Positions 8,462 to 58,447 of a stretch of DNA of 64,000 nt are shown piece by piece. The notes below the pieces were generated by a model. It ran no database searches and was not told the origin of the DNA. It was given only the letters and a program-made list of their open reading frames with translations. The stretch lies in the sequence record NC_041972.1; one strand, written 5' to 3'. The translations under genes and the position numbers were made by a program. Each line of letters opens with the position of its first letter. The stretch's first letter is position 1.

Positions 8462-8512
8462 CGGCATATAGGCCCTCCGTAACGGAGGGCCTTTTATGAC
8501 ATCTTTTTTTTG
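8462..8512. terminator. Hairpin between convergent genes, probably bidirectional
   Basis: cggcata-taggccctccgt-aacggagggcct-tttatgacatc then T-run. Confidence 0.75.
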
Positions 8513-8975: not shown

Positions 8976-9440
8976 TTACTTCATACCGTCCAACTGCTTT
9001 TGAAGTTCCTTTAACTGACGGCTTGCATCCGGCGTCTCGGCGTCATGATCTCTGATCGCTTCAATAAACGACTTCCGTTTGCAATAAGGATACTTCATCC
9101 ATTTATCAAATGACAAACCAAATTTGCCCAAGATATCCGCACGCAGATATTCGAGCTCATACTTTCGATACCCAACTAACGCCAGCGAGTCTTCCTGCTC
9201 GACCTGTAAGATTAACGAGAGCGGCGAGGTTTCCACGTTATGGTCAATAATCCCAAACGTGTCATCGTAAAGCTCTGTTAATCGAATTAGTGGATACTCC
9301 CAGTTCTCGGTAAGAAACGTGGGGTTTTCTAACGCGACATCCCAGGCATCGGACCGATCACTTTCGGACAGACCGAAATCCCAATGGATTAGATGTCGGC
9401 TTGATCGAACGTCTGATTCAGTGTATTCGTCATTAGGGTA
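8976..9440 (-). CDS. Probable -1 frameshift extension (gpT/gp51-like part) of the upstream chaperone ORF
   Basis: No credible RBS or start; overlaps the upstream ORF in the -1 frame across GGG-T8. C-terminal FGLSFDKWMKYPYCKRKSFIEAI resembles tail-chaperone T/gp51 helices (by-eye). Confidence 0.55.
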   Translation of the reverse strand, partial: YPNDEYTESDVRSSRHLIHWDFGLSESDRSDAWDVALENPTFLTENWEYPLIRLTELYDDTFGIIDHNVETSPLSLILQVEQEDSLALVGYRKYELEYLRADILGKFGLSFDKWMKYPYCKRKSFIEAIRDHDAETPDASRQLKELQKQLDGMK

Positions 9441-11008
9441 AAAAAAACCCGTGCTACGTTCAGCGGGGTGTACGCAGGGAAGGTATTGCTCACCAGCGGC
9501 TGACGCGCCTGGCAGTTCGGGCATTTCCAACGCGGCACCGCAACCACACCGACCGTTACCCGGTTGATGAACTTGTTCAGCTCTTCAAAGAACGGTTTAC
9601 GCATATCCGGGGTTGCACTGAATTGCTTCAGCAGTAATGCCACGTCATCGGCCGACTCAACATAGTTGCCGTCGTTGAACTCGATCTTGGTCACCCAGTG
9701 GGCGTAACCGCGCATGGAGGACAGCGCTGCCTGTTTGTTGATGTGCTGCTCACGCTGCTCACGCGTCATGCTGTCGTTGAAGCTGTCGGTGATCGCTTGT
9801 TGAATACCGTTGATCCAGGCATAACCCGCTGCATTCTTATCTTCGAGTGATGGCACCCGCAGATAGAACTTCACATCTTTCACAGTGATGACATTGTCTT
9901 TCATCACTTCAAAGCCGGTCTGGTAGGCAATGACCTGCTCGACGGTACGGCCGCTGAAGTGAGACATGTGCGCACGCTGGGTTGGTGACAGACGATTGTT
10001 GTCAATGATCGACAGACGAGAGACGTTAACTTTCGCTGCTTCAACATGCACACACTTCTTCGGATCGGCGGCACAGGCAGTGACCATGTGGTAGCCAGAC
10101 TTAAAGCGTGCGCCCAGGTAGGCGTTAGCGATCAGATCAAGATCCTGCTCTTTGATTAACGGCAGCAGGGTTTTCTTATCGGAGACACCGATGCTGCTGT
10201 CAGTGACCATACCCAACAGGAAGTCAGTCATGTGCTTACGTACCACGACATCCAGGTTGTTAAACACCAGACCGTTGGTGCGACGACCGAGGATCGCTTT
10301 CTCAGCCATGATGGCGGTTTGCATATCCACAAACTCATCATCACCGGCAATCAGCAATGTGACCCAGATACCAGAATGTGGCAGCGGCAGATGGACATAG
10401 TCACCCATGTTCATCACGCCACGTGCCCGCATCACCGCCTGTGGGCCGGTCAGCAGTTTAGTGCCTTCGGTACTGCGCTTCACTGGCGGGCGAGAGACAC
10501 CCTGCACTTTGTTGCTGTCAAGCAGAATACCCTGCAACCACTGCGCACCATCTTGACGAATGGTCAGGTTCAGACCAGAACGGTACGACAGGTTGGTGAT
10601 GGCGTTACTGGCCAGGGATAGCCAGATCATCGCTTTATCAGCACCGTATAGACTGACGATCTCTTTTAAGATCTTCTTGTCTTCGGTGTTGGTGTCGATC
10701 TCATTGATCAGCGCCGTCGCTGCATCGTAATCCTGATGCATAATAGACAGCACACCTTCCGTGCCGACATCCTCCATGGAATTCAGCTTTTCAATGATCG
10801 GGTTCTGATAGAGCGGATCGAATGCCTGCTCAACGGCTTCAGCTTCGGGTGCTTCGGCATCGCCCTGTTGGCCGGCTTCTGCTGGCTCGGGATCGGTGCC
10901 GATAGTACCAGTAGTCGCCGGACGACCTGGATCAACTTCAGGAATACCAGAGTGGTTTTCTTCAACAGGCTCTTGCTGTGACAGAATGGATGGGTTATCA
11001 CCGGACAT
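9389..11008 (-). CDS. Putative tail/baseplate assembly chaperone (T4 gp26-like, CxxC; phiKZ gp77-like position)
   Basis: 539-aa ORF with AAGGA RBS, acidic N-terminus, CAADPKKCVH and WKCPNCQ metal-binding motifs. Confidence 0.55.
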   Translation of the reverse strand: MSGDNPSILSQQEPVEENHSGIPEVDPGRPATTGTIGTDPEPAEAGQQGDAEAPEAEAVEQAFDPLYQNPIIEKLNSMEDVGTEGVLSIMHQDYDAATALINEIDTNTEDKKILKEIVSLYGADKAMIWLSLASNAITNLSYRSGLNLTIRQDGAQWLQGILLDSNKVQGVSRPPVKRSTEGTKLLTGPQAVMRARGVMNMGDYVHLPLPHSGIWVTLLIAGDDEFVDMQTAIMAEKAILGRRTNGLVFNNLDVVVRKHMTDFLLGMVTDSSIGVSDKKTLLPLIKEQDLDLIANAYLGARFKSGYHMVTACAADPKKCVHVEAAKVNVSRLSIIDNNRLSPTQRAHMSHFSGRTVEQVIAYQTGFEVMKDNVITVKDVKFYLRVPSLEDKNAAGYAWINGIQQAITDSFNDSMTREQREQHINKQAALSSMRGYAHWVTKIEFNDGNYVESADDVALLLKQFSATPDMRKPFFEELNKFINRVTVGVVAVPRWKCPNCQARQPLVSNTFPAYTPLNVARVFFTLMTNTLNQTFDQADI

Positions 11009-11025
11009 TATGCTTATCCTTACCT

Positions 11026-11493
11026 TTACTTTTTAGTGGGGTCGACCTGAACCGGGTCATTGAGTTTGCTTGCTGCGCCAGCGGCAACCGCGTTAGCATG
11101 GGCGCTGTCTGACATGGTCAGAATGGCAGCACCGTGACGCTGCATCGCATCCAGCAATTTACTCTGCAGGACGATGTATTGTTCGTGCACACTGAGGAAG
11201 TCAGCGATGGTGCTGTCATGCAAGGCATAACCGGTTTTGCCTTGATGCTGCTGCTTGATCAACGGCAGTGTTTCATCGATCTCTTTGACTACAGCCAGCG
11301 CCGCTTCGATGTGCGAGCTTAACGCAGAGGGGTTTGGCTGAAAGCGAATGATGTTGGTGTTGACGGCCATGAGACAAGTATTGCTCAGCTCATTGCGCAA
11401 ATTAATCGTATAAGTTGCCGCAGAATCCAGGTACTCCCAGAACTGATCGGGCTGATGGACCTCTGGTGCGAGAGGCGGTTCATTGGTTGACAT
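11026..11493 (-). CDS. Conserved hypothetical protein (155 aa)
   Basis: AAGGA RBS; first gene of the minus-strand operon. Confidence 0.75.
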   Translation of the reverse strand: MSTNEPPLAPEVHQPDQFWEYLDSAATYTINLRNELSNTCLMAVNTNIIRFQPNPSALSSHIEAALAVVKEIDETLPLIKQQHQGKTGYALHDSTIADFLSVHEQYIVLQSKLLDAMQRHGAAILTMSDSAHANAVAAGAASKLNDPVQVDPTKK

Positions 11494-20591: not shown

Positions 20592-20641
20592 GCATAAGGA
20601 GAGGCTTCGCGCCTCTCCTGTTTATGCCGTCTTTTTTTTTT
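20592..20641. terminator. Hairpin plus TTATGCCG and T-run between convergent genes
   Basis: gcata-aggagaggc-ttcgc-gcctctcct-gtttatgccgtc then T-run. Confidence 0.8.
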
Positions 20642-58180: not shown

Positions 58181-58248
58181 CGGCATAACCCCCTGAGAGA
58201 GAAGCGCAATGCTTCTCTCTCAGGGATGCCTGAATCTCTTTTTTTTTA
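58181..58248. terminator. Hairpin flanked by CGGCATAA and a T-run between convergent genes
   Basis: cggcataa-ccccctgagagagaagc-gcaat-gcttctctctcaggg-atgcc. Confidence 0.8.
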
Positions 58249-58447
58249 GTCTGGTTAAATATAGTGGATAGAGAATTAACTTGAATAACAAAAAATAAAG
58301 CAAAGTAATATCAACGCCGGTAAGGGCTACAACAGTTGTTCTAATTTTCAGGCACGTAGCCTAGGAGAAAAAAAAAGGAGGAAGCAGCTTATCCAGTTAC
58401 TTCCTCAAAAACGTTATTTCTCGTCGTCCCCATTCTGGGACATAGTA

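Follow-up and report, generated by a model that had tools for sequence, protein, structure and literature searches.

A T-run at the end of a core gene of phage Deimos-Minion

The window analysed here, 64,000 nucleotides (nt) of sequence record NC_041972.1, is 100% identical to the genome of Erwinia phage vB_EamM_Deimos-Minion (KU886225, Agricanvirus). Its minus strand carries gp273, the Chimalliviridae core gene cg18, whose 3' end contains a run of eight T's (T8) and overlaps a second open reading frame (ORF) in the -1 frame. This arrangement, a candidate programmed -1 frameshift, is the subject of this report. The features of the locus are:

9389-11008, minus strand: gp273, the 0-frame gene, 539 amino acids (aa); Chimalliviridae core gene cg18, in GenBank a hypothetical protein.
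9440-9447, minus strand: the T8 run, candidate -1 slip site, with the in-frame X_XXY_YYZ heptamer U_UUU_UUU at 9440-9446.
9389-9439, minus strand: overlap that would be read in both frames, as the 16-codon tail and TAA of the 0 frame and as the first 17 codons of the -1 extension.
8976-9440, minus strand: -1 frame extension of 154 codons plus TAA (8976-8978), in GenBank within gp272 (hypothetical protein).
9441-9530, minus strand: section of ORF 8976-9530 and of gp272 that lies 5' of the slip site; close relatives have -1-frame stops here.

Codons 520-524 of gp273 read CGG GTT TTT TTT ACC, and the heptamer consists of the last base of Val521 and the two Phe codons, F522 and F523. The 0-frame TAA (9389-9391) stands 16 codons past the second Phe codon. 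ORF 8976-9530 is in the -1 frame relative to gp273, base 9440 belonging to both reading frames, and the extension 8976-9440 encodes a conserved, helical domain (phrog_13274, phrog_12109, phrog_7580). The early start codons of this ORF are solely TTG 9530 and ATG 9524, the latter being the GenBank start of gp272. Both overlap Lys-Cys codons of the gp273 CxxC motif, and no Shine-Dalgarno-like sequence was found at a usable distance from either of them. The section 9441-9530 is most probably untranslated in the -1 frame; close relatives carry -1-frame stops in it. The predicted trans-frame product would have 523 + 154 = 677 residues.

A preliminary description of this stretch had already placed the heptamer in codons 520-524, with T8 at 9440-9447 and the stop 16 codons on, which proved correct in every detail. 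Its statements that ORF 8976-9530 is exactly the -1 frame, with only a TTG and an ATG inside the CxxC region and no usable ribosome-binding site, and that a slip would give a 677-aa fusion, agree with our reading and arithmetic.

Five A/T runs of at least 7 bases were observed in the 64-kb window, against about 5.7 expected from its composition, and T8 at 9440-9447 is the only one located within a long ORF. The T-run by itself is no more than chance; that all relatives keep it along with the -1 ORF, as described below, is far beyond chance. The other A/T homopolymer runs, of 8-10 bases (8504-8511, 20632-20641, 58239-58247 and 58368-58376), lie outside long frames or at the very start of one. 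They probably serve as terminator tails or as spacers close to ribosome-binding sites; of the four, 58368-58376 is flanked by two GGAG-like motifs.

Close relatives keep the frame arrangement

Fifteen other Agricanvirus records are 98-99% identical to the window region, and Erwinia phage AH06 is 80% identical at the nucleotide level. All independently sequenced Agricanvirus records listed in both searches showed the same frame arrangement, the two tblastn matches overlapping by 49 nt in each. It was also present in AH06 and in metagenome contigs.

In AH06, where T8 and the tail of 16 codons are retained, a stop interrupts the -1 frame 5' of the run; no ATG, GTG or TTG follows for 85 codons, and the -1 product is 80% identical to that of the window. 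Between AH06 and Deimos-Minion, substitutions in this start-less 85-codon stretch were distributed over the three codon positions as 6/4/19, mainly at third positions. A second close-relative comparison of the -1 frame gave 14/4/31, again mostly at the third position. Substitutions in the overlap 9389-9439 were spread evenly over codon positions between relatives, as expected for dual coding.

More distant phages with 39-42% protein identity (Salmonella phage SA002, Erwinia phage pEa_SNUABM_37 and Proteus phage 10) have GCT TTT TTT ACC or GTT TTT TTT ACC at the site and the stop 16 codons on. In four metagenomic relatives a -1-frame TAA lies one codon before the T-run, leaving a -1 frame that is open from exactly the proposed slip site onward.

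Conservation of the slippery site across the family

The survey was extended to 35 non-redundant loci in 24 clades, from isolates and metagenomes, with identity down to about 16-20%. The loci included phiKZ, PhiPA3, 201phi2-1-like sequences, Goslar, SPN3US, Wellington, Huxley, EarlPhillipIV, PCH45, Moabite and KpZh_LPS_45, together with Ralstonia phages RP12 and RSL2, Vibrio phages BONAISHI and Yong MS32, Halocynthia phage JM-2012, Bacillus phage AgentSmith and IMG/VR contigs.

At the conserved Phe-Phe position all 35 loci have NNT or NNG, then TTT, then TTT, TTC or TTA. The preliminary description had asked for such an alignment of orthologous loci: an in-frame, T-rich slippery site was present at Phe-Phe in 35/35, with a perfect in-phase X_XXY_YYZ heptamer in 31/35 and G_UUU_UUU in the other four. 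The first Phe codon is TTT in 24/24 clade representatives, against a dominance of TTC elsewhere in the same ORFs (log10 P = -12.8, with each ORF's own usage), the clades being not strictly independent and synonymous positions being saturated at 16-25% protein identity. The ORF of RSL2, for example, has no TTT and 18 TTC away from the site. The codon before the first Phe ends in T in 22 of the 24 clades (background 0.31, P = 7e-10). At the final heptamer position 18 clades have T, five have C, one has A and none has G, in keeping with the re-pairing rules. In AgentSmith, Phe-Phe is replaced by Phe-Leu and the slippery heptamer is retained (GTT TTT TTA), which points to selection at the nucleotide level and not at that of the peptide.

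The frame relation is conserved as well. Beyond the 0-frame stop, the -1 frame is open for 123-161 codons in 35/35 loci. The +1 frame showed no match to the downstream domain in any locus, and it is open mostly for 1-36 codons past the stop (68 in RSL2). Upstream of the site, 2-18% of the -1-frame codons are stops, the nearest of them a median of 7.5 codons before the site. Within clades, the 0-frame tail and its stop occupy the same alignment position. Conservation of both the site and the start-less -1 ORF across the phiKZ-like/Chimalliviridae group carries the recoding claim beyond what had been proposed for this one genome.

The downstream domain is coding and lacks a start of its own

Two genes are annotated at this locus in all GenBank records, and the downstream ORF could be an ordinary gene, its translation beginning at an internal start, at a non-canonical one or through re-initiation, with the T-run merely supplying the codons of a conserved Phe-Phe. 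At the protein level this pair is indeed conserved, and T4 gp26 has it too, close to its C-terminus; in L006, a metagenomic relative, an ATG follows the upstream stop by 18 nt. The remaining evidence makes this explanation very unlikely. Across the loci, the first ATG, GTG or TTG of the -1 frame is found 8-101 codons past the site, with no conserved start, and this is why the annotated downstream products of one and the same domain range inconsistently from 68 to 182 aa. Beginning translation there would remove conserved coding sequence that varies at third positions. From the site to the 0-frame stop, the -1 frame has no stop in 479 codons summed over the clades (log10 P = -21); every clade keeps it open there, something for which an independent gene would have no use. 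The choice of TTT opposes each genome's own bias. The Deimos-Minion ATG 9524 is not conserved, and in close relatives a -1 stop stands between the equivalent position and the T-run.

The start-less -1 ORF is coding sequence. Its products from 28 loci align over their whole length, and phrog_12109 was matched by 27 of the 28. An exhaustive profile hidden Markov model search of 1.84 billion representative proteins returned 79 clusters with the downstream domain, all of 72-186 aa, and none of the 79 was an in-frame fusion to the approximately 540-aa protein. In no case are the two parts simply fused or clearly two genes; they always stand in a -1 relation across a slippery site.

As annotated, the downstream ORF covers the last 80 codons in phiKZ (PHIKZ076.4; L014:3625-4140), the last 68 in AH06 (L002:5206-5733), 109 in Goslar (L016:3604-4125), and 182 in Deimos-Minion, where a part 5' of the slip site is included. 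As a result of this inconsistent annotation the domain is split over four PHROG families (13274, 34704, 12109 and 7580).

Homopolymer runs are error-prone in some sequencing chemistries, and the T8 run could be a sequencing error, as the preliminary description had allowed, or a recent frameshift mutation of a single gene. The first is excluded by the same arrangement in independently sequenced Agricanvirus genomes, in AH06 and in metagenome contigs. The same frame relation recurs in 35 independent loci from many laboratories, no in-frame fused version exists among the 79 protein clusters, and the 0-frame tail and stop are conserved in position within clades. The chance that artefact or gene decay accounts for the locus is practically negligible.

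Probable mechanism of recoding

The sequence data are probably best explained by a programmed -1 ribosomal frameshift that would yield isoforms of 539 and about 677 aa. Most ribosomes would pass T8 in the 0 frame and terminate 16 codons on, giving the 539-aa protein. A fraction would slip back one base on U_UUU_UUU, both Phe tRNAs re-pairing with UUU, and would decode 154 more codons in the -1 frame, through the annotated gp272. The resulting product of about 677 aa would share its first 523 residues with the short form and end in a different, conserved and mostly helical C-terminal domain.

U_UUU_UUU is a recognised, moderate shift site, reported to be less shift-prone in E. coli than the dnaX heptamer (PMC5009743), and UUUUUUU is under-represented in every frame of E. 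coli genes (PMC4066793). The long form is presumably the minor product, as no stimulatory structure common to the family was found and in view of this lower shift-proneness relative to dnaX. Both isoforms are presumably needed.

The same two isoforms could also arise by transcriptional slippage, in which the RNA polymerase of phage or host would stutter on the T-run and produce an mRNA subpopulation with a changed U-run and the two ORFs in one frame. The multisubunit RNA polymerases with which these phages transcribe are their own and unusual. In 22 of 24 clades the run is lengthened by a T at the third position of the codon before the first Phe, which also fits selection on run length, and a conserved ribosomal stimulator was not found. 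Homopolymeric A/T runs are known slippage sites, which has been suggested as one reason for their under-representation (PMC4066793). The run is, however, never longer than 8 T's, and in four clades (PhiPA3, 201phi2-1-like contigs, BONAISHI and Yong MS32) it has just 6, which is short for bacterial-type polymerases. The second codon is TTC in five clades and TTA in one, shortening the run and retaining a legal in-phase X_XXY_YYZ heptamer. The codon after the site begins with T in none of the loci, giving no 3' extension of the run, a weak point as this codon is protein-constrained. Among the six-T sites, the Vibrio phages have TAT TTT TTC, and PhiPA3 and its relatives have G TTT TTT. Keeping a phase-specific heptamer where the T-run shrinks to six argues for the ribosome over the polymerase, and we infer that the slip is ribosomal; polymerase slippage, the chief competing explanation, is unlikely, with some real chance of being correct.

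Several observations weigh against ribosomal frameshifting. The heptamer is imperfect in two clades (PhiPA3 and the three 201phi2-1-like metagenome contigs), in which a G precedes the six T's. Phe-Phe is conserved as protein too, T4 gp26 likewise having it near its end, and part of the nucleotide conservation is for this reason due to the peptide, codon choice excepted. No hairpin or pseudoknot 5-9 nt downstream of the site is conserved across the family, and folding z-scores were mostly unremarkable, with lineage exceptions that include Goslar (-2.45) and the AT-rich metagenome clade of L021 (-1.9). The sole recurring hairpin (9372-9400) lies about 40 nt past the slip site and has one covarying pair; it is too far away for a classical stimulator. 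The cg18 protein is absent from the published crude-lysate mass spectrometry lists of RAY and Deimos-Minion, and we found no report of a junction peptide or a two-band pattern for cg18. AlphaFold2 models were of low confidence, with a mean pLDDT (predicted local distance difference test score) of 44.6 for the 539-aa part (13-sequence alignment) and 48.4 for the 154-aa part (6 sequences), the alignments being shallow and made of close relatives.

A stimulatory structure is not obligatory for frameshifting. Neither an upstream Shine-Dalgarno-like element nor a downstream structure was found as a family-wide stimulator. In Goslar (L016:3655-3690) and in L021 (L021:3622-3650) a stable hairpin begins 9-10 nt past the heptamer, and these two could be lineage-specific stimulators of the shift. 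The hairpin at 9372-9400 of the window (minus strand) encloses the 0-frame stop; it has 8 pairs and a predicted energy of -6.4 kcal/mol and recurs in nine Agricanvirus-like relatives. Both of its arms also encode a conserved stretch of the -1 product.

Genomic context and identity of the cg18 protein

The protein gp273 is a homologue of phiKZ gp077 (tblastn E = 6e-36), Goslar gp081 and RAY gp267 (99% identity). The upstream protein was found by tblastn in 221 phage records, and phrog_4585 and phrog_8054 were matched by 28/28 relatives. A supplementary table of the core-genome preprint lists cg18 (Goslar gp081, phiKZ gp077, RAY gp267) as a hypothetical protein. The cysteines C312, C319, C496 and C499 and the phenylalanines F522 and F523 did not vary in an alignment of 11 sequences, and in a set of 28 they were conserved to at least 90%. 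A zinc site formed by the four cysteines is likely, because they are so well conserved.

The N-terminus of gp273 is acidic and variable. Residues 1-65 (10815-11008, minus strand) are rich in Pro, Glu and Ala, vary in length and sequence among relatives and had a pLDDT of about 25. The Simmy50 homologue has 542 aa against 539, a three-residue N-terminal difference, and SPN3US-like phages have more than 100 extra residues.

One further gene of the region belongs to the genomic context and lies outside the recoding signal:

11026-11493, minus strand: gp274, co-oriented upstream gene, positional counterpart of phiKZ gp078.

A counterpart of gp274 lies directly 5' of cg18 in all annotated relatives. 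The other neighbours of cg18 are genes for hypothetical proteins and for an RNA-polymerase beta subunit; relatives also have a helicase gene there.

The preliminary description had seen in the two ORFs a tail assembly chaperone pair like lambda G/GT. This identity was not supported: no tail-assembly-chaperone family was matched by either part in Pfam, NCBIfam, PHROGs or PDB, gp273 has 539 aa against about 140 aa, and no tape-measure gene is adjacent. A late tail-module role is disfavoured by the RNA-polymerase and helicase context, by the homologue of phage Churi, which is among the early-expressed proteins detected by proteomics, and by the Goslar virion structure paper, which does not mention the homologues gp81 and gp82. 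Silence in that paper would also fit a chaperone absent from the particle.

No meaningful Pfam, NCBIfam or PDB sequence match was obtained for either part. Against PDB, neither single-protein queries nor 28-sequence profiles built for the two parts returned anything but noise (WD-repeat designs, de novo TIM barrels, chitinases).

Some published gene numbers had to be set aside. The "gp273" of the RAY/Deimos-Minion mass spectrometry table is a different gene; it stands in the RAY column, and the RAY cg18 is gp267. The "gp77" of the Goslar structure paper and that of the PCH45 transposon paper are unrelated proteins sharing the number.

A possible relationship to the T4 hub assembly chaperones

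Both T4 gp26 and T4 gp51 belong to PF12322 (T4_baseplate), and they are listed as hub assembly chaperones (PMC3004832). The baseplate chaperone role put forward in the preliminary description found partial support. L021, one of 28 relatives, scored 23.3 bits with PF12322, near the gathering cut-off of 24.5, and two of the 28 matched phrog_150 ("baseplate hub"), to which gp26 and gp51 likewise belong, with E = 3e-6 and 4e-3; the window protein matched neither family, giving no PF12322 match at E up to 1. In profile-profile comparison, hhalign of cg18 against an alignment of gp26/gp51 homologues gave probabilities of 13%, 14% and 1.4%, which are not significant, with the aligned segments collinear with the shared motifs.

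These motifs, which T4 gp26 and cg18 have in the same order, begin with a Cys pair; a beta-strand-like motif that ends in Pro, a second pair in the form CPxC, and Phe-Phe a few residues before the end then follow. T4 gp26 stops three residues after Phe-Phe and resembles the short form, and gp51, which continues for about 45 residues beyond the equivalent motif, resembles the long form. T4 gene 26 also makes two products, by means of an internal start (26'). The T4 genes 26, 26' and 51 (L045:7803-9229) encode the paralogues gp26 and gp51, a short-and-long pair that parallels the two predicted cg18 isoforms. Unlike the T4 proteins, cg18 has about 300 additional N-terminal residues; T4, for its part, uses two genes and no frameshift. 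T4 genes 26 and 51 sit between genes 25 and 27, whereas no baseplate gene adjoins cg18.

Equating the -1 domain with the C-terminal extension of gp51 was tried and rejected (hhalign probabilities of 0.4% and 0.07%, and no phrog_634 match), and is no more than speculation.

The distant, below-threshold likeness of cg18 to gp26/gp51 is suggestive. It offers a lead on function, not a finding: cg18 might tentatively be seen as an assembly factor required in two forms at a fixed ratio, perhaps kin to the T4 hub chaperones. A role in early infection is just as plausible. A bolder proposal, which we think unlikely to be right, is that one core gene would yield, through an obligatory -1 frameshift, functional equivalents of T4 gp26 (short form) and gp51 (long form), with the slip site exactly at the domain boundary beyond which the T4 paralogues differ. 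The proportion of the two forms would then be a conserved control point of an essential Chimalliviridae step, and could be tuned by phage-encoded ribosome-binding proteins.

Novelty and implications

Full-text searches on frameshifting in phiKZ, jumbo phages and Chimalliviridae found no published description of a cg18 frameshift, in agreement with the preliminary description, which knew of none for this group. The locus is a new, deeply conserved case of a known recoding type.

The gene cg18 is among about 70 genes common to all nucleus-forming jumbo phages. If it is recoded, current annotations are wrong at this locus, since the approximately 30 annotated records examined all show a truncated, arbitrarily started downstream "gene", and the core-genome tally misses a conserved domain. 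Knock-down, transposon and localisation studies handling the two ORFs as separate genes would be misread. Deeply conserved -1 frameshifting would then extend beyond the tail-chaperone and transposase paradigms, in phages with hosts from Pseudomonas to Bacillus and apparently without a conserved RNA stimulator.

Comparison with known recoding systems

The lambda gpG/gpGT pair resembles cg18 in its shared N-terminus, in a slippery heptamer a few codons before the 0-frame stop, in a -1 slip that gives the longer product and in a layout that outlives sequence divergence. For cg18, the shared N-terminus reached through a -1 shift near the 3' end is present at the level of sequence signals, and the products would follow from them. 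The two systems differ in the size of the shared part (about 130 aa in lambda, 523 aa in cg18) and in their surroundings, as lambda G/GT adjoins the tape-measure gene and cg18 lies between RNA-polymerase-subunit and helicase genes.

E. coli dnaX (tau/gamma) likewise combines a -1 shift on a homopolymeric heptamer with two isoforms that have different C-termini and a set ratio (PMC5009743). The shifted product is the short one in dnaX, whereas in cg18 it would be the long one. The A-rich heptamer of dnaX has a Shine-Dalgarno-like element on its 5' side and a hairpin on its 3' side; conserved stimulators of this kind were not found at cg18.

The OrfA/OrfAB system of the IS3 family is similar in that a -1 shift joins a start-less ORF to the upstream one, the upstream product also being made alone (PMC4066793). 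Unlike IS3 transposases, cg18 has neither a transposase or mobile-element context nor a downstream pseudoknot.

Although a member of none of these families, the cg18 arrangement works like lambda G/GT, dnaX and IS3 OrfAB.

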